From: Mobula hypostoma | Taxonomy: Eukaryota | NCBI RefSeq assembly: GCF_963921235.1 | Contig: NC_086107.1 | Coordinates: 95,356,001 to 95,420,000 of the forward strand | Direction of reading: 5' to 3' | DNA: 64,000 nt | In this document: positions 27,951-56,014 of the stretch, piece by piece | How positions within the stretch are numbered: position 1 is the stretch's first letter | Layout: the number at the start of each line of letters is the position of its first letter | Notes under the pieces: generated by a model | What the model saw: the letters and a program-made list of their open reading frames with translations, nothing else | Database searches by the model: none | What the model was told of the DNA's origin: nothing | Translations under genes and position numbers: made by a program

Positions 27951-28411
27951 CCTGCAGCTCAGTACGAGACTGGGATCAGAAAGGCTTTGTTTTGCTCTCG
28001 TTCAGCATGGTTCAATTCTCAGTGGCTGTTGGAGGGACCTGACAGTGACAGTGTCTCAGGAGGCTTGATTGTAACTGCCCTGGGTGGGAAGGGGCTGTAC
28101 AGGAGGAGGGACAACTGGCTGCGACTGTACCCAGAGGACATGAGTGTAGCTACACTGTATTGATGGGGGGGGGGTGTTGTTTGGTTTCTGTGGGAACAGT
28201 GAGGAGGGGATAGGCGAGACAATGCTGGTGTGTTCCTGTTATGGGAAAAGAGAGGAGAAGAACTAGTGATTAGCAGGGAGACTCAAATGGTCAGGCACCA
28301 CTTCCCAGGGTTACACGTCACAGACCCATGATCTCATGTCCTCTCTACTCCTTAAGTGTATTCATGTTTCATTTTGCTATTCCCAAGATTTGGAAAATAT
28401 TTGAATACAAA

Positions 28412-28670
28412 CATTGTGTATTTACTATTTCAGTAATATTTGAGTAATATTGTAAATAAATGGTTTGATTAAGTATTCTTTGTTAATGCAGGTTATATGT
28501 AAAAGTAAGTAAATGGCATACGTCATCACACCACCACGTGATGACATATGCCATTTACGTACTGTGTGTGTGCGCAATGCTTAAAGTAAAATCAAAGTTA
28601 GACTCCCATTTCAGACTCTCTGTCTTTTCCTTTAAATTAGTTTTATGTTTTGGAGTTACAAAATTTAACA
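28412..28670 (+). mobile_element. Gypsy-type solo LTR (same family as 50350-50595)
   Basis: Shares atttcagtaatatttgagtaat...gcttaaagtaa...ttagttt..gttttg.agtta..aaca with the copy at 50350. Confidence 0.7.
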
Positions 28671-28954
28671 ACGTACTCAAGTGGAATTTAATCCTGAGCC
28701 CGTTGTCCCCATTATAAACCTATGGACTCTTAACCTGTTGGAGTCAGCTCTGCAATAATGTGCAACAGAGTCAAAGAGCAACCTCACAACCCCAGTCCCT
28801 GCAACTTGATCCTGAAGCAGTACCTTACAGTCAACTAATTGATTTGCAGCAACTTGCAGTTGACTGTGTGATTATTAATCAGTCATTAGCTAATCCCTGC
28901 TAGCATTCTCCTGGTTTAGCAACTATCATGGAGGGAGCTGCCACTGACTGAATG

Positions 28955-29560
28955 GCCATTTATTAATAGCTTCCTGAGAAAGCTAAAGAAATTTGGCCCG
29001 TCCCCCAAAACCCTCACTAATTTTTATAGCTGCACTGTAGAAAGCATTCTTCTAGGGTGTATCACAACCTGGTATGGAAGTTGTCCTGTCCAAGACCGAA
29101 AGAAGCTGCAGAAGACCGTGAAGACGGCGCAGCACATCACACAAACCAATCTTCCATCCTTGGACTCACTTTACACCGCACGCTGTCGGAGCAGTGCTGC
29201 CAGGATAATCAAGGACACGACCCACCCACCAACACACTTTTCGTCCCTCTTCCCTCCGGGAGAAGGCTCAGGAGCTTGAAGACTCGTGTGGCCAGATTTG
29301 AGAACAGCTTCTTTCCAACTGTGATAAGACTGCTGAGCGGATCCTGACCCGGATCTGGGCCGTACCCTCCAAATATCCGAACCTGCTTCTTGTTTTTTTT
29401 GCACTACCTTACTTTCCATTTTTCTATTTATGATTTATAATTTAAATTTTTAGTATTTACTATCGATTTGTAATCCAGGGAGCGTAAAGCGCATTATCAA
29501 ATATCGCTGTGATGATTGTATGCGCTAGTATCAATTGTTTGGCGACAATAAAGTAAAGTT
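28955..29560 (+). mobile_element. Relatively young Rex1 3' end
   Basis: FYSCTVESILLGCITTWYG; PLPSGRRLRSLKTRVARFENSFFPTVIRLL; aataaagtaaagt tail; CpGs retained. Confidence 0.85.
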
Positions 29561-30100
29561 ATTGATTATTCCCATTTATTATTTGCCTTTTAGTTAACTA
29601 TCACCAGTTCATGCTAATTAGTTGCTAGTCACTCACTAATTAACTGGCTCTGGTTAACTGCTGCCTGATTGACCGTTAATGATTTCTGCTGGTCACTTGT
29701 TGCTCACTAATCAATAATGTTCAATGGCTAACATCCTATCAAATAATTTATTAATGGTTATTTGGCACAAGTAACTGTGGTTTAACCAGCACTGAGTAAA
29801 TTAGTTTACTAGCTAGTTACCCTTTGGTTAATTCATGCTCCTGATGATGCTGTTTAAAAAAATAAAGGTTTTTTCTTTGGTTTATAAAGGTTATTTATAA
29901 ACCAGCTTATTAAATACCCCCGATCATTTGTCTGCTAGTTATTTATCACTAATTAATGATTGTTTGTTGAACTCTGACTAATTAACTGCCTGTAAGTTCA
30001 TTGCACTGATTGCCACTGGTAAGGATTCTGACAATTGCTATCACACTACGAACAGAATTCTTTTCTGAAATAACTTGGTCCCCAGCAATATGAAGCTTAC

Positions 30101-30300
30101 GGTTTCCTTCTGTGGGTGTGTTGGATGGTGACCACGTCTGTTCAACGATGCCAGTGGGCAGAGGAACCAGAGGAGGAGTACAGGACACCGACTGACGGAC
30201 AGGGAGCTCTTTCCCTTCAGTTGTTGCCGGGGACTGAGCCAACGTGTGAGTAGCTTCCTGGGTGCTGTCTGTTGCCACTGAGGCAGACGGTGCCTTTAAT
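30101..30300 (-). promoter_or_regulatory. Putative promoter and non-coding exon 1 of the 24903-25018 gene
   Basis: ATTAAA TATA-like motif at 30300-30295; ATG-free unique segment ~30270-30101; donor ACC|gtaagc at 30100-30099. Confidence 0.4.
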
Positions 30301-30579
30301 GCACCTGTCAGCTCACTCAGTTGTACAAAGACCCACCCCTTCTCCTCCCCTCCCCTGGAGCTCAGTCTCAGTGAACAGCTCAAAGCCATTGTGCAGAGGG
30401 GAGGGACTGCTGAACAGGGGAAGAAAGCCTGGTACCCACACTCGACACTGCGCTCCTCAACACTATTCCCTTTGCTTTTTATAAGAAAGATGTATTCTGT
30501 CAAGATCTTTTCAGATGTAACATTCCTTTTCCCTTCTTTCTTTCCCCCAAAGCCTTTTGAGAAGCTGTTAAAGACACAA

Positions 30580-33500
30580 ACACAGAACAGAACCGGAACA
30601 GGCCATTTGGCCCATCGTATCTGCACCGACCATGATGCTAGCCTAACTTACCCCATCTGCCTGTATAAGGTCAATGTCCTCCATTCCCCGGCTGAGTAAA
30701 ATCCCCTTAACCATTTGCTCTCACTTCTGCTTCTACCATCTCCCCTGCCAACACATTCCAGGTACCCACCATTCTCGCTGTAAAAAAAAGTCTCATAAAT
30801 CTTCTTTAAACTTTCCCCCTCTCACTGAAAAGCTGTGTGTTTTAGTGTTTGACATTTCCTCAGGGAAAAAGACTATCTAAGTCCCTCATGATTTTATATA
30901 CCCTACCGAGTCATTCCTCAGCCTCCAGCCCTCCAGAGAAAAATATTCTAAGTGAGACCAACCTCTCCTCATACCTACAACCTTCTAAATCAGGCAACAG
31001 CACCTTCTCCACATGCTTTCTATAAAGTGTCCAGAACTGCACACAACACTCCAAATTTGATGAGGTGCCACACATGAGGCTGCTTAGCAAGATAAATTCC
31101 TATGGCGTTACAGGAAAGATACTGGCATGGAGAGAGGAATGGCTGACGATTGGAAATAACCTCTCCACCTTGCTGACAATCAACCCTGCCACAGCTCAGG
31201 GATATGCTGCTCTGCTCTCTCTACACCCACGACTTTGTGGCGAGGCACAGCTCAAATTTGCTGATGATACAACTATGGTTGGCAGAATCTCAAATGGAGA
31301 TGAGAGGGCATACAGGAGCGAGATGTAAACACAAAATAATCTGCAGATGCTGGGGTCAAAGCAACACTCACAACACGCTGGAGGAACTCAGCAGGTCGGG
31401 CAGCATCCGTGGAAAAGATCGGTCGATGTTTCGGGCTGGAACCCTTCGTCAGGACCCTTCACCAGTCCTGATGAAGGGTTCCAGCCCGAAACGTCGAGTG
31501 CAGTAACTCGTTGTGAGTGTTGCCAGGAGTGAGATGTACCAGCTGGTTGAGTGGAGTCGCAGTGACAACCTGGCACTCGTTGTCAGTAAGACCAACGAAC
31601 TGCTAGTGGACTGCAGGAAGGGTCAGACGAGGGAACACAAACCAATCCTCATGAAGGGATCAGGAGTGGAGAGAGTGAGCAACTTCAAGTTCCTGGGTGT
31701 CAAGATCTCTGGCGATCTATCCTGGACCCAACGTATTTATGCAGCTGCAAAGAAGGCAAGACAGTGACTATATTTCATTAGGAGTTTCAGGAGATTTGGT
31801 ACATCAACAAAGATACTCATAATTTTCTACAGATGTACTGTGGAGAGCTTTCTAACTAGCTGCATCACCGTCTGGTATGGAATGGGGAGGGGGTTACTGC
31901 ACAGGATCGAAATAAACTGCAGAGAATTGTAAACTTAGTCATGGGCATCAGCCTCCGTAATATTCAGGACACCATCAGGGAGAGATGCCTCAAAAAGGCG
32001 GCATCCATTGTTAAGGACCCCCATCATCCAGATCATTGCTTGTTCTCGTCATGAAGGAGGTACAGGAGCCTGAAGGCACATACTCAATGAGTAAGGAACA
32101 GTTTCTCCTCCTCTGCCATCTGATTTCTGAATAGACATTGAATCTATAAATCCTCACTACTTTTTAATTTCTATTTTTTTCGCCCTACTTATTTAACAAT
32201 TTTATATATATATAGTTAAATATTATATATATTTTAGCTCACAAGAGGTGATAGTGGAAGGCTGTTTCTCAGACTGAAGGCCCGTGACTAGTGGTACGCC
32301 TCAGAGATCAGTGTTGTTGTTTTGTGAGAATGGATCCAGGGTCAAAGGTGTGAACTTCATTCCAGATGTAGGAGATCTAGGAGTCCTCCAGTGTCCCTGA
32401 TATTTACATCTGTGTGAAGTGCATCCAGCTCCTTACAGACCATGTTAGGGAACTGGAGCTGCGTAACCTTCTGCTGACATGGAAGATTGAGGAGGTGATA
32501 GGTAGGACCTACAGGGAGGTAACACTCCTAAGTTAGAGGAGGAAGTTGCTTAGTGACTGTGAGGTGAAGGAAAGGAAATAGGCAGGTAGTACAGAGTACC
32601 CTTGTGGCCGTTCCCCTCAATAACAGGTAAAATTTCTTTGGATACTGTTGGGAGGGACAACCTACCAGGGGAAAGCCACAGTGATCAGATCTCTGGCTCT
32701 GAGCCTGGCTCTGTGCCTCAGAGGGGAAGGGGAGAAGGGGAGAAGAGAGTAGAGTGGTGATGATAGGGGGATCCATAGTTAGGGGAGCAGACAGGAGATT
32801 TTGTGGATGTGAAAGAGACTGCAAGGGGCAGGAACGTCTCAAATTGGGTCAACAACATTTTAAAGGGGTAAGGTCTGTAGCCAGACCTCATGGTACATGG
32901 TACCAATGACATAGATAGGAAACAGGTTGAGGTCCTGAAGAGAGAATATAGGGAATTGGGTAGGAAGCTTAAATACAATACTTCAAGGGTAGTCCTTTCT
33001 GGAATGCTTCCTCCCTGGATCTCAGTGACCTGTACAAAGAGGACGGATTACACCTGAACTTGAGGAGGACCAATACCCTTGAGGGCAGGTTTTCCAGAGC
33101 TGTTGCCAAAGATGAGAACTATCTTGGCAGCAGGGGTTTAGGAATCTGAGCGATAGGTCAGTTTGTATACCGGTAGATACAGCACGGATAGAGACTGTGA
33201 AGAAGGATAGGCAGTTGATAGGGCAAAGTTGCAGTTAGTGAGATTGGTTGAAGTGTGTCTATTTTAATTCAGGTGCTCGGGTTCTGAACTTAGAACATGG
33301 GTCAGTACATGGAACTGTGATGTTGTGGCCATTACAGAAACTTGGCTGAAACAAGGGCAGGGATGGCTACTGGATGTTCTGGGGTTTAGATGTTTCAAAA
33401 GGAACATGGAGAGGGGTAAAAGATGTGGGGGAAGTGGCTTTAATAATCAGGAATAGTATCACAGCTGCAGAAAGGGAGGGCTTCCTGAAGACCATGTTTT

Positions 33501-35450
33501 ATGAGGATAGGTTGAGCAAGCCAGAGCTTTTCTCTTTGGAGAGGAGAAGGGTGAGAGGCGACTTAGCCCATAAGATCCAGGAGCAGAAGTAGGCCAATTG
33601 GCCCATCAAGTCTGCTCCGCCATTCAATCATGGGCTGATCCAATTCTTCCAGTCATCCCCACTCCCCTGCCTTCTCCCCATACCCTTTGATGTCCTGGCT
33701 AATCAAGAACCTATCTATCTCTGCCTTAAATGCACCCAATAACTTGGCCTCCACAGCCGCTCGTGGTAACAAATTTCACAGATTTACCACCCTCCGACTA
33801 AAGTAATTTCTCTGCATCTCTGTTCTAAATGGACGTCCTTCAATCCTGAAGTTGTGCCCTCTTGTCCTGGACTCCGCTACCATGGGAAATAACTTTGCCA
33901 TATCTAATCTGTTCAGGCCTTTTAACATTCAGAATGTTTCTATGAGATCCCCCCTCATTCTCCTGAACTCCAGGGAATACAGCCCAAGAGCTGCCAGACG
34001 CCTCTCATATGATAACCCTTTATTCCTGGAATCATTCTCATGAACCTTCTCTGAACCCTCTCCAATCTCAGTATATCCTTTCTGAAATCAGGAGCCCAAA
34101 ACTACACACAATATTCGAAGTATGGTCTCGCATGTGCCTTATAGAGCCTCAACATCACATACCTCCTCTTATACTCTAAGACTTGATAGAAGAGTACAAG
34201 ATAATAAGAGGCTTAGATCGAGTGGACTTTTCCCAGGGTGGAAATGGCTATTACAGGGGGGGCATATTTTAAGGTGATAGATGGAAAATATAGGAGGTAG
34301 GAGTTTTACACAGTGAGTGGTGGGTGCATGAAGCCTGCTCCAGGAGTGGTGGTAGAGGCAGGTACATTAAACACACTTAACAGCCTCTCAGATAGGCATG
34401 TAGATGACAGAAAAATGGAGGGCTATGTGGGAGGGAAGGGTTAGAATGACCTTGGGTAAGTTAAAAAGTTGGGACAACATTCCAAAGGGTCTGTACTGTG
34501 CTGTAATGTTCTATGTTATATCTATATAAACAAATGAAATGTAAATACACAAGGCATGGTTACAGAGAACAGCACAGGAACATGCCCTTTGGCCCACTAT
34601 ATTTTGGCAAACTAATTAAAGAAGTAATTAAATGCCTAACTATTCCCTTCTGCCTGTGCAATGTTCACATCTCTCCATTCTCTGCATATTTATGTTCTTA
34701 TCGAAGAGTCAACTTCACACTATAGTATAGACTTTCTAAACCAGAGAGCATCCTATTAAACGTCCTTTGTGTCCTCTCCAAAATCTCCCCATCCTTCCTG
34801 TAAAGGGGCAACCAGAATTGAATTCCATACTCCAGATCAAAGTTCAAAGTAAATTTATTATCAAAGCACCATAAATGATCGTGAGATTCATTTTCTTGCG
34901 GGCATACCCAATAAATCCATAATAGAATAATAACCATAACAGAATCAATGAAAGACCACTCAACCAGTGTGTGAAAGACAACAAACTGCCAAATGCAAAA
35001 AGGAAGAAATAATAAATAAATAAACAATAAACATCGAGAACATGAGATGAAGAGTCCTTGAAAGTAAGTCCATTTCAATGATGGGGCAAGTGAAGCTGAG
35101 TGAAGTTATCCCTTTGGTTTAAGAGCTGGATGGCTGAGGGTTAGTATGGTGTAGTCTATCCAGAATTTTCTATATCTGCCTCATAACTTCTGGACTCTTG
35201 CACTCAATTTGTTGACTAATTAAGGTAAGCCTGCTACACACCTTCCTTACCACCCTGTTAATCTGTGCAGCCACTTTCGGGGAGCTATGGACTTGGATCT
35301 TAAGGTCCCTCTGTACATCGACCCTGTTAAAGATGCTATCATTAATTGGGTTCAGTCCCTTTACATTTCATCTCCCAAATGCTATACATTACACTTGTCC
35401 AGATTAAACTTCATCAGCCATTTCTCTGCCTATGTCAGCAGCTGATCTAT
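30580..35450. mobile_element. Mosaic of CR1 (3' ends; ORF1/APE region at ~32320-33480 on +) and Rex1 (~31150-32220 on +) fragments
   Basis: KFADDTTMVG, VERVSNFKFLGVKIS, gtggccattacagaaacttggct (APE), multiple CR1 tails. Confidence 0.75.
31328..31523. mobile_element. Penelope pLTR-derived mini-insert with two back-to-back hammerhead motifs; 15-bp TSD
   Basis: TSD caggag(c/t)gagatgta at 31313-31327 and 31524-31538; hammerhead motifs at 31421-31456 (-) and 31464-31499 (+). Confidence 0.8.
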
Positions 35451-36614
35451 ATCATGTTAAGAACATGTTTGATATACTTAGCCTCATTATTCAGAGCTTT
35501 CAGTATAGGTGTTTGGTTGTAACTGTTGTGCAAGATGCTATGAGCCTATACTTTTTGAGCATAGTGTTCAGTTTTGGTCAGCCTGTAATAGGAAAGACCC
35601 GTATAAACATTATCTGGGAGTGGGATTTTTGGTTTGTGTCTGCCAACGTAATGATTGCACACTGAACAGCTGAGCAGAGGGCAGGGTGGCCATGCCATCC
35701 TCATTTCCCAGGGACAGCCAGCGACTGGTCCAAGCAGTGCCCTGTGACCCACCCACTGCTCCCCTGCCGTGTTGCCTACCCCATCCCAACTTGTACATCC
35801 AATCTGAGAAGCAGCAGGAGCCTAAAATTCAACTAAAGGCAAAAGTTTAAGTATGAAACAGAGAGAGTGCTCAGGAGGAACTGGAATAAATCCATCCAAA
35901 GTCAGTACAACCAGCATCCACAGACCCAGCACACAGAGATGATAATCCCTCCCCCCGAGATTGGATCCAGTTCCATATACTGGAAGTGAGGAGCTGGTGA
36001 TCGAACCATCTTTCATTGCACCCACAAAGTACTCCAGTGTCTGCCTTACTGTTCATCTGATCTATCCGCACTCTGCCCTGTGTCACTTCAACTGATGGCT
36101 CCAGTGTAATGTGAAAGTTTAGTTTACTTGCTGGTCGAAAGCCGCTTCCACCATGCCAGTCATTGATGGCCCATTTGAGGGGTACAGCAGCTCTTTCCAT
36201 TGGTTGCCTCGCGAGCCACGGCACCGGTGTCTGGTTTCAGGCCCCTCAGGGGTATAAGAATAGCATGTATGAGAGACTCACTGGCTTTCCTTTGTCTCCA
36301 GGGGCTCCTCTTCACACTGAGGTCACAACCAATGCTGAAGAACCATTGGGAAAGTACGCTGCAGATATGGAAGGGCCCACAGGCACACTTAGCTAAGTAT
36401 CTGTTGAATGTTTAGTTCTGTAGTTGTGTAACTTGGGGAAACTTAATGAACTATCTGCTGAGTGCGAAGTGTTACTGAATGTTTAGTGTCGTAGTTTTTG
36501 TTAACTTAGGGTGGCTTAGATGAGTACTTATTTGACTTAGATGCTTTTACTGTTTGTTGGTAAATAACTGCATCTTCTGTGTCACTTACCAAATCCGTGA
36601 GCCTGCTTCCCCGT

Positions 36615-37135
36615 AACATCTGTCTGTCCATTACACTGTGTAATGGACATCTGTCCGTCCATTTCACTGTGTAATGGGCATCTGTCCGTCCACTACACTG
36701 TGTAATGGGCATCTGTCCGTCCACTACACTGTGTAATGGGCATCTGTCCGTCCATTTCACTGTGTAATGGGCATCTGTCCGTCCACTACACTGTGTAATG
36801 GGCATCTGTCCGTCCACTACACTGTGTAATGGGCATCTGTCTGTCCATTACACTGTGTAATGGGCATCTGGCCATCCACTTCACTGTGTAATGGACATCT
36901 GTCCATCCATTTCACCGTGTAATGGGCATCTGTCCGTCCACTACACTGTGTAATGGGCATCTGTCCATCCATTACACTGTGTAATAGGCATCTGTCCGTC
37001 CACTACACTGTGTAATGGGCATCTGGCCATCCACTTCACTGTGTAATGGACATCTGTCCATCCATTTCACCGTGTAATGGACATCTGTCCATCCACTACA
37101 CTGTGTAATGGACATCAGTCTGTCCATTACACTGT
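36615..37135. repeat. 30-31-bp minisatellite (catctgtccgtccactacactgtgtaatggg), ~17 copies
   Basis: Highly regular tandem units with no spacers. Confidence 0.95.
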
Positions 37136-37742
37136 GTGTGCACTTGTCACCGTGACACCAGAGCACTCCCATCCATACAGCCTCTCTCGCCCTGTGGCCC
37201 AGATTCACTGTACACCAGTCCCAGCCCACAGATCTGTTCCAAGCTTCATGATACTTTCACTGGAAAATCCTGGACTTGGCTCCAGATCTGAGGACACGGG
37301 AGATGTCCTCACACTGGAACTGGAGGGTCCTAAGCTGACCCCTAAAGTCTGGGATCAGATATGAATGATGGAAAGAGCTGGGGTTTTCGAGCTGAAGTGT
37401 GGGAGGGGGGCAGGGAGGAGGGGACTAATAATTATAGGTCCATGGAGCAGGAAGGGAGATAATATTGCAAACCCAAGAACATACAATCTGGCCAAAAAGA
37501 GCAGAAATTAAATATATGGGTCATGTGTAAATTCCCCTTTAGAATCAAAGCAGACCTTAGATGACAAGTAGGAACAAAAGTGACACCACTGGAGTCTGGG
37601 GTACGAAACACGAGAGGCCAAGTCATCTTCACTCCTATAGCAACCCTCTATGTGTCCGGGTTATGGTTGAATCACTGGATTTCTAGAAATTCTCAGGCCA
37701 AGACACAAAGACAGGCAAAACACGCAACTTTTTTAGCTTGAC

Positions 37743-37774
37743 TTTATTAGCAAAGCAGTTCAGTAGCATTTATT
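37743..37774 (-). terminator. Two AATAAA polyadenylation signals of the galanin-family gene
   Basis: tttatt at 37769-37774 and 37743-37748, 75-105 nt downstream of the stop codon. Confidence 0.7.
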
Positions 37775-37848
37775 CCAGTTAAATCATCTCAAGGCCTTGT
37801 CTCCGTCGCGGAGATTGGCAGTCACGCAGGAGTCTGCCATTGCTCAGG

Positions 37849-37907
37849 TCAGGCGTCTTGTGTCTGCTCTGTCAGTGCGAGGTCCAGGTTATTCAGGGCC
37901 AGGATCC
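37849..37907 (-). CDS. GAL/GALP: Galanin-family precursor, exon 6 (last): (G)ILALNNLDLALTEQTQDA*
   Basis: Acceptor tttctgctggttttgacag|, phase 1 matching exon 5; resembles the GMAP tail (EAGALDRLLDL); TGA then AATAAA. Confidence 0.8.
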
Positions 37908-38109
37908 CTGTCAAAACCAGCAGAAAGCATGAACAATTTAATCGCAGGATATCCAGTTCCCAGCAGTTGTCACACTCTGTAAAGGTCAGCAATGACAAAC
38001 TGCCAGCTCTGTGACATTTAGAAATGTCTTCGTAGACACTGATCAACAGTCTGAATGTATAACCACACTCACACCACCACTGTGACTGGGACTCCAGCCC
38101 CGGTTACTG

Positions 38110-39680
38110 AACAGGAATGGAATTCTTGGGGCTGGCGAACAGGGATGTTGATGGCTGTGGGTTGGAGTAAAAGGAATTAGGACGGGAGCTGGCCAAGGTT
38201 GATTAGAAGGAGATACTAGCAGGGATGACAACAGAGAAGCGATGGCTGGAGTTTCTAGGAACAATTTGGAAGGCACAGGATAAATACAACCCAAAGAAGA
38301 AGTACTCTAAAGTCAGGATGACGCAACCAAGGAACAACAAGAAAAGAAGCTTGACCTTAGTGGTTAGGAAGATGTTGGAGTTGATTGTTAAAGATGAGGT
38401 AACAGGGTACTTGGAGGCACATGATAAAATAGGCCAAAGTCAGCATGGTTTCCTTAAGGGAAAATCTTGCCTGATAAATCTGTTGGAATTACTTGAGGAA
38501 ATAGCAAGCAAGACAGACAGTGGATGATCGGTGGATGTTGTGTGCTTGGATTTTCAGAAGGCCTTTGAGAAGTGCCGCACATGAGGCTGCTCAGCATAAG
38601 GTGTTACAGGAAGGGCGTGGATAGAGCATTGGCTGATTGGCAGGAGACCAAGAGTGGGAGTAAAGGCAGCCTTTTCTGATCGGCTGCCGGTGACCAGTGA
38701 TGTTATGAAGGGTTGGTGTTGGGACTGCTTCTTTTTACAATAAATGTCAATGATTTGGATAATGGAATTGATGGCTTTGTGGCCAAGTTTGCAGAGCACA
38801 GGAAGACAGGCGGAGAGGCAGGTAGTGTTGAGGAAGCAGGGAGGCTGCAGAAGGACTCCCTGCTTGGGTTGGATGAATGGGCAAAGAAGTGGCAGATGGA
38901 ATAGAGCATTGGTAAGTCTTTGGTTGTGCACTTTGATATAAGGAATAAAAGCATAGACTATTTTCTAAACAGGAAGAAAATTCAGAAATCCAAGAAGCAA
39001 AGGGACTTAGGAGTCCTGTGCAGGATTCCCTAAAGGTTAACTTGCAGGTTGGACAGGTGGTGAGGAAGGCTAATGCAATGCTAGCATTCATTTTGAGAGG
39101 ACTAGAATATAAAAGCAAGGATGTAATGCTGAGACTTTATAAAGCACTGGTGAGGCCTCACTTGGAGTACTGTGAGCAGTTTTGGACCCCCTGTCTAAGA
39201 AAGGATATGCTGACATTAGAAAGGGGTCAAAGGAAATGCATGAGTATGATGCCGGGAATGAAAGGGTTATCACATGAGGAATGTTTGATGGCACTGGGCC
39301 AATACTCGCTGGAAGTTAGAACAATAAGGAGGGATCTCATTGAAACCTATCAAATGTTGAAAGGCCTAGGTAGAGTGAATGTAGAAAGCTTGTTTCCTAT
39401 ACTGGGGAGTCTAGGAGCAGAGGGCACAGCCTCAGAATAGATTGATGTCTATTTCAAATGGAGATGAGGGGGAATTTGTTTAGCCAGAGTGAGGTAAATC
39501 TGTGGAATTTGTTGCACAGGTGGCTGTGGAGGCCAGGTTGTTGGGCATATTTAAGGTGGAGTTGATAGGTTCTTGATTAGTCAGGGTGTGAGGAAATTGG
39601 ATTGGCCATGATGAAATGTTGGGGGAGACTCGATTGGCCAAATGGCTCAATTCTGCTCCTATGTCTTATGGTCTCATGGT
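38110..39680 (+). mobile_element. CR1 LINE in intron 5 of the galanin-family gene
   Basis: SQHGFLKGKSCLINL, KFAEHRKTGG, LYKALVRPHLEYCEQFW; 3' end tcttatggtctcatgg. Confidence 0.88.
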
Positions 39681-40084
39681 GTCCAGGTTCTCTCACTTCC
39701 AGATCACCAACCAGTGACCCTGTGACTGACCCAATGGTCTGGTCCTCTGGAAAACTTATCTAATCTCCTCTCATCCATCACCTTCCCTTTCTCCAGCCCC
39801 TCACCCCTCCCCTCCAAACCACTTCTGCCAGGAGCTCTGCTCTTCAGCCTTCCCTGTGAGATGTCAGTGACCACATCCACACTTTATTTCCATGGGTCCA
39901 GAGGTCTGAGCTGTTGCAGGTTTTTCTTTGTGCACCAGGAGACCTCAAATCCAAGCACTATTCCATTCCCATGTAGAGAGTAGAGTAGGGCCCTGGTAGA
40001 TTTCTCAGCCTGGGAGTCTCTGTGACCACAGCATTCAACAGGAAGCCACATCCCAATCGGGGGAATTTACACATCACAACCCAA

Positions 40085-40505
40085 CCTAGGACTTCCCACC
40101 GATGGGATATCCCACCCATTACATCCCAACCTGTGACATCCCACCCATTACATCCCAAACTGGGACTTCCCACCCATTATATCTCAAAATGGGACCTCCC
40201 GCCCATTACATGCCAAACTGGGACTTCCTACCCATTACATGCCAAATTGGGACATCTCACCCATTGCGTCCCAGACGGGGAGATCTCACCCATTACATCC
40301 CATCCTCAGGAAGTCGCACTCATTACATCCTAACCCTAGGACATCTCACACATTACATCCCAACCTCAGGATGTCCCACTCATTACACCCTAACCATGGG
40401 ACACCTTACCCATTACATCCCAAAGTGGGACATCTCACCCATTACATTCCAAACTGGGAAATCTCACCCATTGCATCCTACCCTGGGACATCTCACCCAT
40501 TACAG
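40085..40505. repeat. 30-bp minisatellite (cccattacatcccaaactgggacatctcac)
   Basis: About 14 copies. Confidence 0.9.
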
Positions 40506-40639
40506 TCATGGAGCCACATGAAGCCCCAGGTTATCTCAGCCATGATATGGAGACAGTCCTGGTAGTCATGCACTGCTGACTCTGCCTTGGAGCTGCTTCC
40601 TCAGCCGTGCATCTCAGCAGCATCCCCGTCTACACTTAC

Positions 40640-40690
40640 CTGCCAGGCGTGAGTAGGACAGCATTTCCACCAGTGGCTGAATGGTATCTC
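40640..40690 (-). CDS. GAL/GALP: Galanin-family precursor, exon 5: (R)DTIQPLVEMLSYSRLA(G), GMAP helix
   Basis: attctcccacag| acceptor and CAG|gtaagt donor, phase 1-1; aligns with GMAP NIMRTIIEFLSFLHLK. Confidence 0.82.
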
Positions 40691-40759
40691 CTGTGGGAGA
40701 ATTCACAACATTGCCAAATGGTAATGGAACCAACTGAGATACCAAAGCAGCCTCTGCCT

Positions 40760-41340
40760 CCCTGAATTTACCCCACCACCCACCAAACCCAACTCATCCC
40801 CACACTCCTCTCCTAAACACCTCCACATCTCAAACCACCCACACCCAAGCCCCAATCCCCCACATACCCCCACATCCCAAACCACCCACCCACTCCTCTC
40901 CTACACACCCTCACATCCCAAGTCCCTATCCCCTACACACTCCTCTCCTACACACCCAACATCCCAACACATTCACACCTGTCCCTATTCCTCACACCCT
41001 CGTCTCACATCATTCTCCCATCCCAACCCACCCACACCCCAACCCATACCCGACACAAACCCCTCTTCGACACACCCTTCCAATCCAAGCCATTCACATC
41101 CCACCCCTGTACTACACACTGTCAACTCCAGCTACCCCAAACACCCCTCAGTCACAAACCCACCTCAACCATACTCCTCGTCCTGTCTCCACCAACCCCC
41201 TCCCATGCACCCTCCTAACCCAACGCACTCACCCCCACACCAATTTCCCGCACCACCCCTTTCCCTCACCCTGCCAGCCCACCTTACCCAACCTCACCTG
41301 AGTGAACACTGCCCACCCCACTCATCCCACACACTCTAGG
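40760..41340. repeat. C/A-rich low-complexity tract
   Basis: (ca/cc)-rich and G-poor on the + strand. Confidence 0.75.
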
Positions 41341-41472
41341 TGCCCTCTCTCCACCCAGCCTAGCCCTCTGCCACTCAGGAATGGGATGGCCCTCTTATTT
41401 CAAGGGCCTCATTAGACACCCGGCATCTCGCACTGCAGAGCATGGAGTTACACAGTAATCAATGATCCTCAC

Positions 41473-41571
41473 TGTGGTCTGCACCATCGGAGTTGGACCT
41501 GGCTCCAGCAATGTCCCTTTTCCCAGCGAGGCCAGGCCTATCCATCAGCAACCGATGACCATTTGCAGCAT
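41473..41571 (-). CDS. GAL/GALP: Galanin-family precursor, exon 4: (D)AANGHRLLMDRPGLA-GKR-DIAGARSNSDGADH
   Basis: cttctgtcctttcacttcag| acceptor and ACA|gtgagg donor, phase 1-1; HR...D..GLA-GKR matches galanin 14-29 plus the amidation site. Confidence 0.9.
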
Positions 41572-41639
41572 CTGAAGTGAAAGGACAGAAGCAGCTCAGC
41601 TCTCCCCAACACCAGACCATCAACAGTTTGAACACCGGG

Positions 41640-42295
41640 AGACACTTGTAACAGGTACCAGCACCAACATTCAGAGTTACTGGTATCAGATGCTGGGACC
41701 AACACTGAGAGTGACTGATAACAGACACTTGGACCAACACTGGTAGTGATTGGAAATGGACACTGGGGCCAACACTGGTAGTGATTGGTAATGGACACTG
41801 GGGCCAACACTGGGAGTGATTGGTAAGGGACACTGGAGCCAACACTAGGAATGATTAGTAATGGACACTGGGGCCAACACTGGGAGTGATTGGAAATAGA
41901 CAATGGGGCCAACACTGGGAGTGGTTGGTAATGGACACTGGGAGTGACTGATGAAAGACACTGGGATCAATACTAAGAGTGACTGGTAATGGGCACTGGG
42001 GTCAACACTGAGAGTGATTGGTAATGGGCACTGAGGCCAACACTGGGAGTGACTGGTAATGGACACTGGGGCCAGCGCTGGAAGTGATTCGTAACAGACA
42101 CTGATGTCATCACTGGGAGTGGATGATAATAGACACTGGGACCATCACTGGGAGTGACTGATAACAGACACTGGGACCAACACTGGGAGTGACCGATAAC
42201 AGACACTGGGACCATCACTGGGAGTGACCGATAACAGACACTGGGACCAACACTGGGATGACCGATAACAGACACTGGGACCAACACTGGGAGTC
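41640..42295. repeat. 35-bp minisatellite (ccaacactgggagtgattggtaatggacactgggg)
   Basis: aacact recurs at 41701, 41736, 41771, 41806 and onwards. Confidence 0.92.
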
Positions 42296-42299
42296 ATTC

Positions 42300-42780
42300 T
42301 GCTGTACTCCAAGGAATAAAAGAAGCCTGCCCTGTCTCTCTATATATCTCAGGCCCTGTAATGTTGGTAATATTTGTGTAAATCTTTTCTGCTCTCTTTC
42401 TAGTTTAACCACATCTTTCAGATAACAAAATTATATACAGTACTCCAAGTGTGGCCTCACCAATGACTTATATAACTGCAACATAACATCCCAACACCCA
42501 CAGTCAGTCTCCTGACTGAAAAAGGCCACCGTACTAAATGCTCTTTTTCACCATCCTGTCTACCGGTGACATCGGTTTCAATGAAGTATCTACTTGTACC
42601 CGTAGTGTAATGGAACAGATACTTGTACTTGTATCTGTTCCATTACACTCCCCAGCGCCCTACCATGCATAGTACAAGTACCACGCTGATTTGACTTTCC
42701 AAAATGCATCATCTCATACTTCTCTGTGTTGAAATCTACTTGCCATTCATTGGCTCACTTCCCTGACTATACAAGATACC
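42300..42780 (-). mobile_element. Old CR1 fragment
   Basis: KLEREQKRFTQILP; tactccaagtgtggcctcacc. Confidence 0.7.
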
Positions 42781-43239
42781 CTTTTTTGTATCTCAGTACG
42801 CATGACAATAATAAACCAATACCAAATCTCCCCAGATTTACAGTCTGCAGTGAGCAACCTGCACGTTTCTGGGATCTGGGAGGAAACTGGGGAGGTAGAG
42901 AAACCCCACAGGGAGAAGGTGTCAGCACCCACGGTCAGGACTGAACTAGGATCTCTGGCTTGAAGGCAGCAGCGCTTGTTACTGCACCAATGTACAGACA
43001 TAAAGGCCTGTTAGTCTTTTGATTATTACCTGGAATTCTTCGTGACTTGTTCATAATCTTGTACATGGGAAATTCCCTCCTAATATTTGTGTCCAGTGCA
43101 TTTTGCATATGACAACAATATGCTGCAAAGTTCAAGTTTTCCCTTTTCTTCTCATCAATGAAGTCCACCTTACCAGGCGTATAGCAGGGGGAGTTAATTC
43201 AGCTGCTGCAGTGTGGGAGGAGGTGTGACTGTTACTTAC

Positions 43240-43294
43240 CGGGACCTAAGAGATAGCCAGCACTGTTCAGTGTCCAACCTCTTCCTTCTTTTGG
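43240..43294 (-). CDS. GAL/GALP: Galanin-family precursor, exon 3 (55 nt): PKEGR-GWTLNSAGYLLGP
   Basis: Perfect galanin(1-13) core; cttacttttcag| acceptor and CCG|gtaagt donor, phase 0-1; same size as GAL exon 3. Confidence 0.97.
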
Positions 43295-43828
43295 CTGAAA
43301 AGTAAGCTTAACAGTTTTAGTTTACAAAGGGACATTATCTTGCGATTTTTTTTTACATTAATTCGCCCAGCCTTTTCAGTGGCAACCACATGCTGTGAAA
43401 CTCTGACCAAAAGCGCCTCCATCTCAGCACCATCACAGAAAGACTCAGCTTCAGGGGCAAAATGGACATCTTGAAAAGTGAGGAAACAGCCACAGGCTCT
43501 ACGGACTCTCCTCTCTCCTACGTCAACGCAAACACATTCCCCCTAGAGGTGAGATAAATTAGTTAGGGCCAACTAATTCACTGCACGTAGACGCAGGCAC
43601 TAGCAGTATCCAGCACATTCAAAAGTTAGCAAGTACTTAGAGGAAGGGTATCTTCAGAACTTGCCTTGGCACAGTGAGAGACAGAGGTTCCAGCAACCCT
43701 TCACAGATTATTCACCTGTTGATCCAGTTTTATACCTTCTGCCCTCTCCCGTCGGCTGTTTTAGCCAGCACTGGACAGAGGCAGAGGATTAAACTGTGAC
43801 CCCACTGCCGAACACCCAAGATAATTAC

Positions 43829-43909
43829 CATCAGAATGAATCCGAAACATCCCATTGTTAAGCCACAGAGGATCAAAGAGGTCCGGGTGAGAGAGAGGCC
43901 TCGCCACAT
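43829..43909 (-). CDS. GAL/GALP: Galanin-family precursor, exon 2 (81 nt): signal peptide MWRGLSLTRTSLILCGLTMGCFGFILM
   Basis: tctctctctccccccag|ATG; donor ATG|gtaatt, phase 0; 27 codons, as in the GAL signal exon. Confidence 0.88.
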
Positions 43910-44379
43910 CTGGGGGGAGAGAGAGAAAATCGACAGTGGTGAGAGGACCACGCTGCAGGGACCCCACTCTGGAGCCCTCCCAGAGACCCAGCCTTGGCCT
44001 CGCTCTCACTGGGCATGCCTGAATCCCATCCTCTGCCAGATTAGAGCTGTATTTGCTGCCGATGGATCTTGTTGAGTTCGGGAAGCAGAGAACCCACAGG
44101 CACCCACAGCACCATGGGACGAGGTAGGAGTGCGGGGGGAAGGGGAAGTGTGTGTGGAACTGTGTGGGAGGGGAGAGATGTGATGGGAGCACCTCAGGGA
44201 CTGCAGTGGTTCAAGAAGGCAGCTCATCACCAGCTTCTCAAGGGTAACTAGGGATGGGTTAGCTGGCAATGCCCACATCTCGTAAGTGAATAAATTTTTT
44301 AAAATAGCCAAATGGCCTAATTCTGCTCCTATGCCAAAGGTCTTATGAGAGTGTTGGGGGGGGGGAGGAAAAGGATATG

Positions 44380-44710
44380 AGATGTGAGGAATGAGTAGGA
44401 AAGGGTGTGGTGGAGTGGTGTGTGTAGGGGAGGAGAGGAATGAGATGGGGGGAGATGTGGGTGGGGTAGAGGGAGTGTGGGGGCATTGGAGAACATGCCA
44501 GAGAGAGGAAGAGTTGGGATGGGAGATGTGGGTGGAGGGGAATGGAGGTGTGGGTGGGTAGAGGGGAGGTGTGGGGGAGGTCTGTGGGGGAGGGAAGTTG
44601 TGCAAGGGAGGGGCACTGGAGGGGAATGGAGGTGTGGGTGGGTAGAGGGGAGGTGTGGGGGAGGTCTCTGGGGGAGGGTAGTTGTGCATGGGAGGGGCAG
44701 TGGAGAGGAG
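44380..44710. repeat. G-rich low-complexity tract with a ~75-bp tandem duplication
   Basis: ggaggggaatggaggtgtgggtgggtagaggggaggtgtgggggaggtct occurs twice. Confidence 0.75.
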
Positions 44711-44829
44711 GGGTACTCACAGGGGGTTGATGTCACTGGGATGTCTGTGTGATGGAGGAACCATGACTAGTGTTTGCAGATTGGGGGGGGGTGATTTGGT
44801 GGCAGTGAGGGCAGAAGCATTGACATCTC

Positions 44830-47820
44830 TCAGAACTACGACTGTACCTGCCTCTAAAATTGCTCTGACCAGCTCCTTCCATATATTCATACTCTCACAT
44901 CCCCTTTAAATCTCCCCCCCCCCCCCCAAACCTATGCCTTCCAGTTTCAGATTCCCCACCCTGGGGAAGAAGATATGATCATGCACTTTATCTGTGTCCC
45001 TCAGGATTTGATAAGGTCACCCTCAGCTTCCTACACTTCAGGGAAAACTGTCCCTGACTAATAATAAGTACTTTGTTGATCCCAAGTGGAAAATTCTTTT
45101 GTTACAGCAGCCACATTTTAAAATACACTTAGCAGTGTTCAGACTTAATAATAACGTACAAAAAAACAATATACACAATAATATACTAACCAATCTCTTC
45201 TTATAATTTAAGCCCTCAATCCCTGCAATTTTCTTGTGAATCTTTTCTGCACCTTCTCCGCTTAATCATAGACTTCCTATAGCATGGTGACCAGAACTGC
45301 ACACAATCTCCATTATCCCCTCTGACTCAGTGTAATGTTGTACGTCATTGGCTAGTTCACCCTGCATCCCATGTAATCTAACCTTCTGGAGCAGACTACC
45401 ATCTCTAAAACCCATCCTAAAGTCCACACGGACAGTATCTACCAGCCTGCCATACATAATTTAATTGGTCACCCCCTCAGAAGATTCATTCCAATCCATG
45501 ATGCATGATTTCCCACACACAAAGCCATATTGACCATCTCTAATCAGTCCTTGACTTTCCAAATGCAGGTAGATCCTATCCTTCAGAATACCCTACATTA
45601 ACTTTCCCACTGTAGTTTCCTGGCTTGGGATTGTCCTTGCTGCCATTTTAAAGTAAGGCACAACATTCCCAACCACCAGTCTTCTGGTACCTCACTTGTG
45701 GCTACAGATGCCAAAATCTTTGTCAGAAGCCCAGCAATTTCTTCCTTTGCTGTTGCACAATGTCTTAGGGTGAACTTGGTCAGATCCCAGAGACTTATTC
45801 AATTTTGTGCTCCTTAACTCCGCCAACATCTCCTGTTTTGTAACAGTGATATGTTTCAGATCTTTTCTCTCATGAATTCCTCAGCTCTCATGATGCTTTC
45901 CAAGGTAAATATAAGACAGTATTTTATTTATGTATTGATAGATATAGCACATTAACAGGCCCTACCAGCCCAATGACACACACCGTCCAATTACACAATG
46001 CGACCAATTAACCTTCTAACCTGTATTCCTTTGGGATGTGGAAGGGAACCGGAGCACCCAGAGGAAATCCATGCAGTCATGGAGGAGCAGACAAACTCCT
46101 CATGGACAGAGGTGGAAATTGAATCTGGGTTGCTGGTGTTGTAATTGTGTTACACAAACTGCTACCCCACTGTGTTGCCACCGCAGACCATAAGACATAA
46201 GACATAGGAGCAGAATTAGGCCATTCGACCCATCGAGTCTGCTCCACCATTCCATCATGGTAATTTATTAACTCTCTCAAACACATTCTCCTGCCTTCTC
46301 TCCTTAACCTTTAATGCCCTTATTAATCAAGTGCCTACCAATCTCCTTTTAAGAATACTCAGTGACTTGGTCTCCACAGCCATTGTGGCAATGACTTCCA
46401 CAGAGTCACCACACTCTGGCTAAAGATATTCCTGTGCTCCAAAGTGGTGTCCTTCTACTCTGAGGCTGAATATACTCGTCAGTATAGGAAACTTCCTCTC
46501 CATGTCTATTCTATCTAAACTTTCGAATATTTGCTGGTTTCAATGAGATGCCCCCTCATTCTTCTGATCTCCAGCAAGTACAGGCCCAGAGCCATCAAAT
46601 GCTCCTCGTACATTGACCCTTTCATTCTCGGGATCCTTCTCATGAACTTCCTCTGGACCATCTCTAATGCCAGCACATCTTTTTTCAGATAAGGGACCCG
46701 AAACTGCTCACAATACTCCAAATGTGGTCTGACCATTGCCTTATAAAGCCTCAGCATCACATCCTTGCTTTTATATTCCAGTCCTCTTGAAATGAATGCT
46801 AACATTGCATTTGTCTTCCTTACTATTATTCAACCAGCAAGTAATCCTGCTCAAGGACTCCCAAGGTCCCTTTACACCTCTGATTTCTGAATTTGCTTCC
46901 CATTTAGAAAATAGTCCATGCCTTTATTCCCTCTACCAAAGTGCATGACTATACACTATATTCCATCTGCCACTTCTTTACCCATTCTCTTAATCTGTCT
47001 AAATACTTCTGTATATTCCCTGCTTCTTCAACAGTACCTGTCCCTCCACCTATCTTTGTATTAACTGCAAACTTGGCCACAAAGCCATCAATTCCATCGT
47101 CCTAATTACTGACATATAACATGAAAAGAAGCGGTCCCAACACCGACCTCTATGGAACACTAACAGTCACTGGCAGCCAGCTAGAGAAAGGGCACAATAA
47201 TATGCTTGCAGAATCTCTTTGAATTCCCCTTTACCTCATCAGTTAAGAGTACCTCATACCCTTTATTCCCTGTTCTAACCCCAAACTCCTTAATTTTTCT
47301 AATATACTGACAACTGACTGATCTGCTTTTTAAAAATAAACTTAATGATATGTTCTCCACTTCCCTCTGAGATAGAACATTCTAAAGGTTCATCACTGTC
47401 TGACTTCATCTCCATTCTAACTGACCAATCCCTTATTTGGAGATGATGTTGTTCTGGATTCCTCACTCCCTGTCCACCCTGTCAAGCATTCAGATCACTG
47501 CAATTCTGTTGAAAGATCATCAACCCAAAATGTTAACTGTTTCTCATTGCACAGATGTTGCCTGACCTGTTGAGTGTTTCCGGCTTTAATTGCATTTAAA
47601 AAAATTCTAACTCTTTGTAGGTCTCAATGAGGTCATGTTTCAATCTTTTAAACTTTAAAGAAAAGAATCTTGGTCTGTTGAGTATCTCCTGATATGACAG
47701 ATGAACCATCCTAGAAACCTGACCGGGGTATCTTTTCTGCACTCCCTCTGGCCTACAGCAAGTATATCCTTCTCTAGTTAAGGAGACCAGTATTTTAGGC
47801 ATGGTCTTAATAAAGCACTA
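44830..47820 (-). mobile_element. CR1 fragments plus an HE1-type SINE (~45950-46170) in intron 1 of the galanin-family gene
   Basis: LAFISRGLEYKSKDVMLRLYKAMVRPHLEYCEQF; ggaaccggagcacccagaggaaa SINE core. Confidence 0.75.
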
Positions 47821-48045
47821 GGAAAATATCTCTACTCTTTTACACACGCAAGAATGGCCAACAAATTATTGGCTTTGCTAATTATCAAGAAGTTAGTTTT
47901 AGTGATTTGTATACTCAGATCCCTTCAAACACCAACTTTTCTCAGTCTCTCTACATTTCTCTCAATGTGCTGGTAACCCAGTGCCAACACACTTTCCAAA
48001 TTCTGACAGAATAAAGAAAGTTATAAGGTAATAAAATAAATTTAC

Positions 48046-48210
48046 CTTGATATGGATGAAGAAAACACCCGTTTGTTTCTGAAGTTTGGATGAATTATTT
48101 GAACTTGGGAGGATTCAATTGTTTCGCAAGCAGAGTCTACGTGGAGAACAGCAAAGCTCAGATGACAACAGATGAATGTTGGAGCAGAGACACTGAAGGC
48201 TATATATATA
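48046..48210 (-). promoter_or_regulatory. TATA box and putative non-coding exon 1 of the galanin-family gene
   Basis: TATATATA at 48210-48201; donor AAG|gtaaat at 48045-48044; spliced junction TCAAG|ATG gives a purine at -3. Galanin genes have a non-coding exon 1. Confidence 0.6.
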
Positions 48211-53800: not shown

Positions 53801-53866
53801 ATGATGCTGTGTTTCGCGGTATTTCTCTGGCTGCCTTTCCTCGCTGTAGCCGCTCCTGCCGCCTTG
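53801..53866 (+). CDS. Unidentified secreted acidic preproprotein, exon 1: signal peptide MMLCFAVFLWLPFLAVAAPAAL
   Basis: Hydrophobic core with an AVA-AP cleavage motif; TTG|gtaagt donor, phase 0. Confidence 0.78.
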
Positions 53867-56014
53867 GTAAGTGAGGGGGAAGCAGGGAATAGAACATTTT
53901 CTGCTGACCGTGGAGAAGACTGCGGACTGAAAGAGGTGAGAGCAGAGATTTCAATTAACCCACCGTTCCTGAGAACTAGGTTTATTTATAATGTAGAGTT
54001 GATGTTCTAAAACACACCACGAGACTGTGTGTGTGGGGGTATAAGTTCTCAACACAGAATTACCCTCATTGCTGTGAACCCCAAGATCAAACTTTTGGCT
54101 AAGGAGTAATAAAATAAATCTAACTGAAATCAAAACCTTCAGTATACAACAGTGACCTGAGGAGTGGGGAAGGGTTGTAATGACTCTGTTCCTGAGTTTT
54201 AAATGCTACATTTAGTATTTAAAAATTTGACACCACTTAGTGAAATGGTATTCTGTGTTGTGAGTATAAGTATACTCCCAGATCATTTTTACGAATATAA
54301 CATCTTTTGTTTATATTTTGATTGAATTGAAACTTAACTGGAGGACTTTTGACATCCATTTTTAAAATTTTGTTTTTCAGATTTGGGAAGGAGGGCACCA
54401 TTCCAACTGAAAGAGGACTTCTGTAGTTTGCTTATGGTCTTTGTCGGAATCCTATATTACTTCAAGTCCAAACTTTGTGCCCCTGAACACACTACAGGAT
54501 AATTTTCAGTTTTATCAAACCTGTCCAGAAACAAACTCCATTTTATGACATCGCAAGAACTGCCCAATGGCAGAATTGCTTTCTCATCACATCATAATGG
54601 AGCAGGACCATCTGACCAGCACCAACCCTTCTGCCACCATTCAATCATTATAAAAGCTAGCTATTCAAAAATCATTTTAACATAGACATGAACCACATAT
54701 TGAGTCTCCACTGGGTTAAAATCCCCTCATTGTCACTAAACTTTAAGTTACCCGAGGTATCAAGAGAAGTCAAGGATTTAATAATAAGTCAAGAGTAAAT
54801 GATGAGGGATAGAAAGTAACGAGGATCAAAGTGAAAGGAAGTTGGGGAATTTTACTACGGATTTTAATGATCAATCATTATTCCTATATTTAAGGACAGG
54901 AATATAATGCATGTTTTTCAAATTTGTACATCACACAATAATTGGAATGTCATAAGCAAGGAGGATACTGACAGTAAGATTTAAGAGCGGTTGCAAGATA
55001 ATTGACCTTCAGTTACTTATAAGGAAGTAGGTAATTTGGGATTTCTTTCCATATAGAGGAGATGGTTAGTCACAGGTCTAGTACAGGTATTCTAGAATCC
55101 TGAAAAATTTTGACAGTGTAAATGAGAAGTAGTAGTTTCCAGTGGTGGTAGGGTCAGTAAACAGATATGCAAGAATTCATGTTAGTTTGTTTTTATGCAG
55201 AAGATTGTAATCTGGAATGTGCCCACTGCTGGAAGCAGTTTCAACAGTAAATTTCAAAAGGGTACTATTCCCGTCGAATAGTTTTCAAACAATGAAGTAT
55301 TGCACTTCCATTGAGTTTACTTTAGTATTAAATGATTTCATGAAGCTACAAGTATTTGATTTTCTGCCTGCATGAAGTCTGAGGTGCAACTGCTCCATTG
55401 CTTAATTGAAGTCTCACTGTGGACCACTGTAAACTGCCTTTAGCCCTTCTTAGCGATAGGCCTTATTCTGAACTGTGAGGGTTGCTATAGTGTTATTAAC
55501 GTAGCTGAAAGCGTAGACCCCTCAAAAGAAAATCAGATGAAAATTATTTAAAGAAAGATTAATGCTTCAATGGAAAAATACATCATTTGACCCTGGAACA
55601 AAATCAAAAAGTATGCAGATGAAAAGTACTCTCTCTCTGAGAAGGCAAAGTGTTTATCACTTTAGAATGCTCATGTAACGTTTTAAATTTTGAAGTCACA
55701 GCTTGAAGTGACCCAAGCCTAAAAGGTCTGATAATTTATTTTGTAGATAAGTGTTCAATATATTAATGCAAATGGAATTCTTTTAGTTTCACTTCCTTAA
55801 AGCATAATAAAATATTCCACTTGAAGTGGTACAGCCCTGAAGGTATTACAAAACTAAAATATTTATCCAGACAACAGACCTTTGATTCATTTTCATTTTC
55901 CTGTGAAATTGTGAAAATAATATTGTTCTAGTCTTGGTATGACGGTAGTGGCTGGGGAAATGCTTAACAGAAATGATAGTAGACGAAGTGCAATGGGGTC
56001 CTACTCTGAGACTC

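Follow-up and report, generated by a model that had tools for sequence, protein, structure and literature searches.

A second galanin gene, gal2, in the ray Mobula hypostoma coexists with canonical GAL

Introduction

Canonical galanin (GAL) is not the only gene of its kind outside mammals, where a second galanin gene has been discussed since 2014 under the names 'GALP' and GAL2. In that year Kim et al. reportedly called the second galanin gene of coelacanth and Xenopus GALP and, as reviews from the same laboratory relate, are said to have placed GAL and SPX2 on one duplicated linkage group and GALP and KISS3 on another. Here we analyse a galanin-family gene carried by a 64,000-nucleotide (nt) stretch of the genome of the devil ray Mobula hypostoma (contig NC_086107.1, positions 95,356,001 to 95,420,000 of the forward strand), which we refer to throughout as the window. 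A first-pass annotation of this stretch had read the gene as a divergent second galanin paralogue, possibly the counterpart of mammalian GALP. We conclude that it is very probably the gal2 gene of M. hypostoma (type B, 'galanin peptides-like'), one of two galanin genes that are older than the split between cartilaginous and bony fishes. The gene is an ortholog of gal2 in other vertebrates and coexists with canonical GAL in the same species. An age greater than the cartilaginous/bony fish split fits an origin of gal2 in the early vertebrate genome duplications.

A galanin-type precursor gene in the window

Direct reading, splicing and translation recovered all the peptide pieces of a 114-amino-acid (aa) galanin-type precursor, which is encoded by five exons on the minus strand. 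The spliced coding sequence (CDS) is 345 nt long and its translation is identical to the precursor proposed by the first-pass annotation, whose exon number, exon lengths, GT-AG sites and intron phases were all reproduced. Each of the four introns between the coding exons runs from GT to AG (4/4) with a polypyrimidine tract before the AG, and the exon lengths of 81, 55, 99, 51 and 59 nt give intron phases of 0/1/1/1.

Coding exon 1 (43829-43909; this and all the following gene features are on the minus strand) encodes Met1 to Met27, including the signal peptide, and its hydrophobic N terminus with a -3/-1 pattern places the likely signal-peptidase site after Gly23, a position that is heuristic only. 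Coding exon 2 (43240-43294) contains the end of the propeptide, PKEGR, followed by galanin residues 1-13, GWTLNSAGYLLGP (43241-43279); the 13-mer is exact and is the sole GWTLN match in the window. Peptide residues 14-29 (41525-41571), the GKR signal (41516-41524) and the start of a GMAP-like tail are in coding exon 3 (41473-41571). The tail continues through coding exon 4 (40640-40690) and reaches its C terminus in coding exon 5 (37849-37907), which closes with a TGA at 37849-37851. The residue before Gly1 is therefore read directly as an Arg in the monobasic context KEGR, and GKR stands after residue 29. Spurious long open reading frames (ORFs) cover exon 3; they are produced by a minisatellite with a 35-bp unit in intron 2 and extend from it into this exon.

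An AG acceptor lies directly before the ATG at 43909, and the 5′ untranslated region (UTR) must therefore occupy at least one upstream exon. Its putative location at 48046-48180 (non-coding exon 1) is suggested by two signals: a GTAAAT donor at 48045, which sets the 3′ end, and a TATA box, TATATATATA, at 48201-48210; the 5′ end is a guess. The TATA box, a putative promoter read from the sequence, lies in a region about 91% conserved in the stingray Hemitrygon. At the other end of the gene, the 3′ UTR (37743-37848) holds two AATAAA signals (37769-37774 and 37743-37748). Both the TATA box and the AATAAA signals had been noted in the first-pass annotation.

The window protein is 100% identical to the RefSeq protein XP_062919377.1, 'galanin peptides-like [Mobula hypostoma]' (P0390). 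The entries XP_062919377.1-79.1 share a 90% cluster with 'galanin peptides-like' of Hemitrygon akajei (P0001), which is the best database match, with 96% identity to the window protein. At the nucleotide level, window positions 27849-53909 correspond to GCA_963921235.1 OY992602.1:95,383,849-95,409,909, with 26,061 of 26,061 nt identical. The gene is thus already annotated publicly for this very assembly and belongs to a known family, which makes it an ordinary result for the window itself; the novelty that the first-pass annotation had implied does not stand. The database entry of the Mobula gene lists the Pfam Galanin family (PF01296), and for P0001, whose mature peptide is that of the window protein, the Galanin score is 50.4 bits (cut-off, 20.5).

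Two galanin paralogues older than the split between cartilaginous and bony fishes

A maximum-likelihood tree of 58 galanin precursors (IQ-TREE) separates canonical GAL, or type A, from a second clade, type B, with support of 100/99. Cartilaginous and bony fishes are present in both clades, and the duplication therefore predates the split between them. The window protein groups with its Hemitrygon counterpart (100/98) and then with that of the skate Rhinoraja (100/99), inside the chondrichthyan type B clade (100/99). The alignment shows marks that tell the two types apart. Whereas type A precursors read ..LCATLSETFG..SAKEKR before the peptide and HAVDNHRS.. after Pro13 and have a strong GMAP, type B precursors read ..LILCGLVTECFG..MPKDKR and then HA(ANG)HR.L.DKGGLAGKR. 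The window protein bears the type B marks, with both the LILCGL..CFG..MPK and the AANGHR motifs present.

Type B is found among fishes in sharks, a skate, rays, Polypterus, sturgeon, gar, Amia, several teleosts and lungfish, and among tetrapods in frogs, salamanders, caecilians, squamates, turtles and alligator; the type B gene of Xenopus laevis (gal.2, P0326) goes by the name 'galanin prepropeptide, gene 2'. There was no mammalian or avian type B protein among the matches listed. Type A occurs in sharks, chimaera, skates and rays, the rays including M. hypostoma, Hypanus and Hemitrygon. The type A precursor of M. hypostoma (P0130), which carries both the Galanin and the GMAP Pfam domains, is encoded on the 118.10-Mb chromosome, as against the 117.07-Mb chromosome for gal2, and Hemitrygon likewise has both genes (P0140, type A; P0001, type B). 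The genome accordingly holds the two galanin loci that the first-pass annotation expected, P0130 and the window protein, and the location of P0130 on another chromosome, together with the type B placement of the window protein, upholds its view of the gene as a second ancient paralogue and not an ordinary GAL. The same annotation had taken the divergence of residues 14-29 as a sign of paralogy. These residues are divergent, but they do not mark the paralogue: shark gal2 peptides are conservative, and the change is a batoid-specific acceleration, with type B branches of 0.62 and 0.56 in batoids versus 0.03-0.1 in sharks.

The type A proteins of the same rays have peculiarities of their own. P0130 of Mobula reads GWTINSAGYLLGP, a Leu4-to-Ile change in an otherwise invariant core, and in the type A proteins of Hemitrygon (P0140) and Hypanus (P0136) GLAGKR is replaced by ..DPFGKR and ..NPIGKR, respectively. 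Both galanin paralogues seem to be fast-evolving in myliobatiform rays.

Transcription and constraint

Of the sequence words that make up the 6-kb gene body, some 5-6% occur in public M. hypostoma RNA runs, which is approximately the exon share. In one run (X2), depth over 37870-43869 was confined to the bins that hold exons 5, 4, 3, 2 and 1, and the unique intron bins were at 0; exon 2 also had depth in a second run (X1). Exon 3 (41472-41571) was matched with 0 mismatches by a 605-nt contig (X2, depth 60.8) and by a 164-nt contig (X1), and the flanks of these contigs, 320 + 185 nt and 51 + 13 nt, respectively, do not continue into the introns. The flank lengths of the 605-nt contig fit exons 1-2 with about 184 nt of 5′ UTR on one side, and exons 4-5 with about 75 nt of sequence past the stop codon on the other. 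The roughly 184 nt that this mRNA contig has upstream of the ATG are slightly more than the positions of the TATA box and the donor would predict (about 135 nt). The expression that the first-pass annotation had anticipated is thus seen as exon-only depth and exact exon 3 contigs, and its five junctions are supported indirectly.

The orthologous locus of H. akajei (L001) is collinear with that of Mobula. Flanks and introns are 82-93% identical between the two, whereas the exons are each 95-98% identical (98% in exon 4) and the CDS as a whole 97.1%, with splice sites shared in all five exons. The 10 differences among the 345 nt of the CDS comprise 5 synonymous and 5 nonsynonymous changes, corresponding to a ratio of nonsynonymous to synonymous substitution rates (dN/dS) of about 0.32; none of them alters the mature peptide, KEGR or GKR. 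Taken together, these data establish the gal2 locus as a transcribed gene under purifying selection. It is more than a chance match because the 13-mer is exact, the exons and splice sites are conserved in Hemitrygon, RNA is confined to exons and the protein is identical to a RefSeq entry.

Many fragments of reverse transcriptase of the long interspersed nuclear element (LINE) type are scattered through the window (38070-39870, 42270-42870, 14035-15236, 57718-58987 and elsewhere). RNA contigs that stem from paralogous LINE copies are drawn in their thousands to the copies in intron 4, which masks the gene-specific mapping signal.

Predicted processing and alternative explanations

The gal2 gene comprises six exons, the first of them non-coding, and gives rise to a spliced mRNA of about 0.6 kb that encodes a 114-aa preprohormone. 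From what is known of the family, signal peptidase would cut after approximately Gly23, releasing a signal peptide of about 23 aa. The short propeptide that remains ends in Lys-Glu-Gly-Arg, and a prohormone convertase would be expected to cut after Arg32 and at Lys-Arg 63-64, with a carboxypeptidase and the amidating enzyme then turning Gly62 into the amide of Ala29. The predicted product is an amidated 29-residue peptide, residues 1-13 of which constitute the galanin pharmacophore, the invariant receptor-binding core; the C-terminal part of the precursor would be a shortened, degenerate GMAP-like tail. Given the identity of residues 1-13, the peptide would most likely act as a galanin-receptor agonist.

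The site before Gly1 is KDKR in sharks, KDRR in the skate and KEGR in Mobula and Hemitrygon. An Arg at P1 combined with a Lys at P4 is a recognised monobasic context for prohormone convertases.

Several points weigh against reading the locus as an intact gal2 gene with this product. The replacement of the usual dibasic site by KEGR makes cleavage at the N terminus of the peptide less certain. Pfam recognises Galanin in the ray and skate proteins, but the GMAP domain (PF06540) gave no match for P0001 or P0002 (ray and skate) at E-values up to 0.1, and none is on record for the Mobula gene; all that can be aligned with the conserved FLxYLxL block of GMAP is a remnant, ..MLSYSRL... The shark branches are exceeded about tenfold in length by that of the batoids, so that constraint may be partly relaxed. 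Moreover, splicing is shown indirectly, as the table of joints was filled by joints of intronic transposons (38.07-39.87 kb).

The alternative that survives best, although we consider it unlikely, is that KEGR stays uncleaved and that the product is an N-terminally extended, GALP-like peptide. Both Mobula and Hemitrygon have Gly instead of Lys at P2, and mammalian GALP likewise has no dibasic site and is N-extended; however, the Arg at P1 and the Lys at P4 form a monobasic context, and the GKR amidation signal is kept, unlike in GALP. A wider form of this idea, on which we would place equally little weight, is that the myliobatiform change from KDKR to KEGR blocks cleavage, that the resulting N-extended ligand is convergent with GALP and that, the type A core being altered as well (Leu4 to Ile), galanin signalling has been re-partitioned between the paralogues.

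We regard it as quite improbable that gal2 is decaying as constraint relaxes and, although transcribed, no longer yields a functional hormone. The undetectable GMAP, the shortened tail, the lost dibasic site, the change of His14 to Asp and the long branch would all suit such a copy. By contrast, Mobula and Hemitrygon both retain an uninterrupted ORF and all splice sites, and the homologous precursor annotated in Rhinoraja is intact as well; the two rays do not differ in the mature peptide, KEGR or GKR, the exons lie far above the introns in conservation with the dN/dS given above, and the mRNA contig reaches a depth of 60.8.

Two further alternatives can be set aside almost entirely. A recent, ray-specific duplicate of GAL might show the long batoid branch and the 47-49% identity to shark type B that we observed, but the window protein is nested in chondrichthyan type B (100/99), apart from batoid type A, which forms its own clade within A, and it has signal and propeptide motifs of type B that are common to sharks and tetrapods. 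A divergent and relocated single GAL orthologue of the species, with which the N-terminal 13-mer, GKR and the exon layout would agree, is refuted by the second locus, the separate canonical GAL (P0130) on the other chromosome, and is also at odds with the presence of both genes in Hemitrygon and with the A/B split (100/99). We therefore retain the reading of the locus as gal2.

Relation to mammalian GALP

The neighbours of gal2 in sauropsids point to a connection with GALP. In the turtle Emydura, gal2 is preceded by a KASH5-like gene (EF-hand_9 and KASH_CCD) and a classical RAS gene, in that order, and followed downstream by TIP39/PTH2, which is encoded on the other strand, and then by a uroplakin-II-like gene. 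KASH5, RAS and gal2 stand in succession in a second turtle, Eretmochelys, and in a rattlesnake, Crotalus tigris, gal2 and TIP39 are likewise tail to tail, with TIP39 2.7 kb past gal2. The Pfam TIP39 matches have E-values of 7e-27 in Emydura and 4e-25 in Crotalus. Human PTH2 and KASH5, which we take to be directly adjacent, map to 19q13.33, and GALP maps to 19q13.43.

In the tree, GALP was represented by the published mature 60-aa peptides of human and rat, which are short and have a very long branch. They fall weakly inside type B, nearest to the gal2 proteins of alligator, turtle and lizard, and forcing them to group with type A costs 3.8 log-likelihood units (approximately unbiased test, p-AU 0.043). 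Because of the PTH2/KASH5 adjacency in sauropsids, this placement and the complementary distribution of the two (GALP in mammals, gal2 elsewhere), we lean towards the view that mammalian GALP is a relocated, fast-evolving descendant of the gal2 lineage, that is, that the two are co-orthologous. For the ray locus itself, the probable link to GALP runs solely through its orthology to sauropsid gal2.

Other points count against this connection or limit it. Hu et al. (2016) regarded the second gene as a duplicated GAL ('GAL2'), since it keeps GMAP and shows no synteny with human GALP. Mammalian GALP precursors were not recovered among the matches listed by a single-protein search, a profile search (1.84 billion representatives) or a profile baited with human GALP, in which GALP either scored under the thresholds or ranked too low to be listed. 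Furthermore, none of TIP39, KASH5, RAS, spexin and kisspeptin was found in the 64-kb window (six-frame motif scans for spexin, kisspeptin and TIP39), to which the neighbourhood comparison was limited, elasmobranch genes being widely spaced; the 19q13 markers that the first-pass annotation had looked to, PTH2 among them, are likewise absent from it.

The structure of the ray protein differs from that of GALP. The core follows directly on Arg and GKR stands after residue 29, which is the galanin-type arrangement, and the architecture of GALP is absent; the ray gene is not to be filed as GALP by its structure. The first-pass suggestion of a GALP counterpart thus finds an echo in sauropsid synteny and in the weak grouping of the GALP peptides with type B, but not in the architecture of the protein.

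The adjacency of gal2 to PTH2 in sauropsids and to KASH5 in turtles bears on the dispute over GAL2-GALP orthology (Kim 2014 versus Hu 2016), and it may matter more than the window gene. If GAL2 is indeed the orthologue of GALP, the physiology of GALP (feeding and reproduction) would have a galanin-like ancestor that is accessible in fishes and reptiles.

Further observations concern the same neighbourhoods. The RAS gene between KASH5 and gal2 in turtles (L006:5817-7872 and L004:4937-6736, both minus strand) encodes 186 aa ending in CVIL. This gene may represent a fourth ohnologue, in addition to HRAS, KRAS and NRAS, that human 19q13.33 lacks, a possibility that would fit a 1/11/12/19 paralogon. 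In gar, a gene for a 107-aa product (L007:17994-19542, minus strand) occupies the tail-to-tail position of PTH2 without a TIP39 motif, and the next gene is uroplakin-II-like, as in turtle. The neighbours of gal2 in the teleost Triplophysa are a connexin, a tetraspanin and a G-protein-coupled receptor, and these have no counterparts in the window.

Other features of the window

The sole recognisable neighbour of gal2 in the window codes for a dynein adaptor of the BICDL family; its first coding exon lies at 3343-3624 on the minus strand, and the remainder runs off the left end. This exon encodes the CC1-box motif DLYLAAELGKALLERSQEL, matches BICDL1 in PDB 6F1T at 3e-8 and has a weak Pfam HAP1_N match. 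The first-pass annotation had named this neighbour BICDL2: the family was right, but the PDB match is BICDL1, and there was no BICDL2 chain among the PDB matches.

The public annotation also has a gene for a 104-aa product that starts at 53801 on the plus strand (first exon, 53801-54010), head to head with gal2; the product has a signal-peptide-like start and no Pfam match. We considered HRC as the identity of the neighbour at 53.8-62.3 kb and rejected it, having found neither His-rich nor acidic repeats there, nor any Pfam match. SPX2, KISS3 and PTH2 were rejected in the same way for 24903-30300 (minus strand), where there was no spexin, kisspeptin or TIP39 motif and the ORFs had no Pfam match. 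No annotated gene is on record in window positions 27849-37849 (L009), which include part of the 24903-30300 stretch.

Two minisatellites interrupt the introns of gal2. One, with a 35-bp unit in about 18 copies, lies in intron 2 (41663-42298); it is not functional gene sequence and is expanded in Hemitrygon (L001:15051-16676). The other, at 40103-40504, has a 29-bp unit in about 14 copies.

Beyond the window, the protein P0309 and its cluster members (ENA) contain three repeats with a galanin-core-like ..NGYTMNSAGYLANP.. sequence and may represent an invertebrate precursor of the galanin/allatostatin-A type.

Comparison with known galanin systems

The ray gene is most readily compared with gal2 of sharks (P0003-P0009) and Xenopus, the gene that Kim et al. 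2014 termed GALP and Hu et al. 2016 GAL2: it belongs to the same clade and, like them, coexists with GAL. Its gene structure is also theirs. The 81-nt first coding exon with cag|ATG...|gta borders is shared with gal2 of shark, gar and loach, and the succession of a non-coding exon, a signal exon, an exon ending after Pro13 and three more coding exons is shared with these three and Xenopus. As in sharks, the peptide has 29 residues and contains AANGHR, whereas the gal2 peptides of bony vertebrates are three residues shorter (HA-HR). The ray protein departs from other gal2 proteins in its length (114 aa versus 119-123 aa) and in a tail that no longer scores as GMAP, and from shark gal2 in having KEGR in place of KDKR, Asp in place of His14, further changes in residues 14-29 and a branch about ten times as long.

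The ray gene and canonical GAL agree in residues 1-13, which are identical, in having GKR, a signal peptide and five coding exons, and in the amidated 29-mer that is predicted as their product. Unlike GAL, it lies on another chromosome and has another signal peptide (..LCATLSETFG..SAKEKR in GAL) and other residues 14-29 (HAVDNHRS.. in GAL), and the GMAP of GAL is well conserved.

Mammalian GALP resembles the ray gene in its galanin(1-13) core, in a gene of six exons, of which the first is non-coding, and in having no dibasic site before the core. It differs in that the peptide is 60 aa long and non-amidated, with an 8-residue N-terminal extension that places the core at residues 9-21, in that it is without GMAP and in that it gives rise to alarin by exon skipping.

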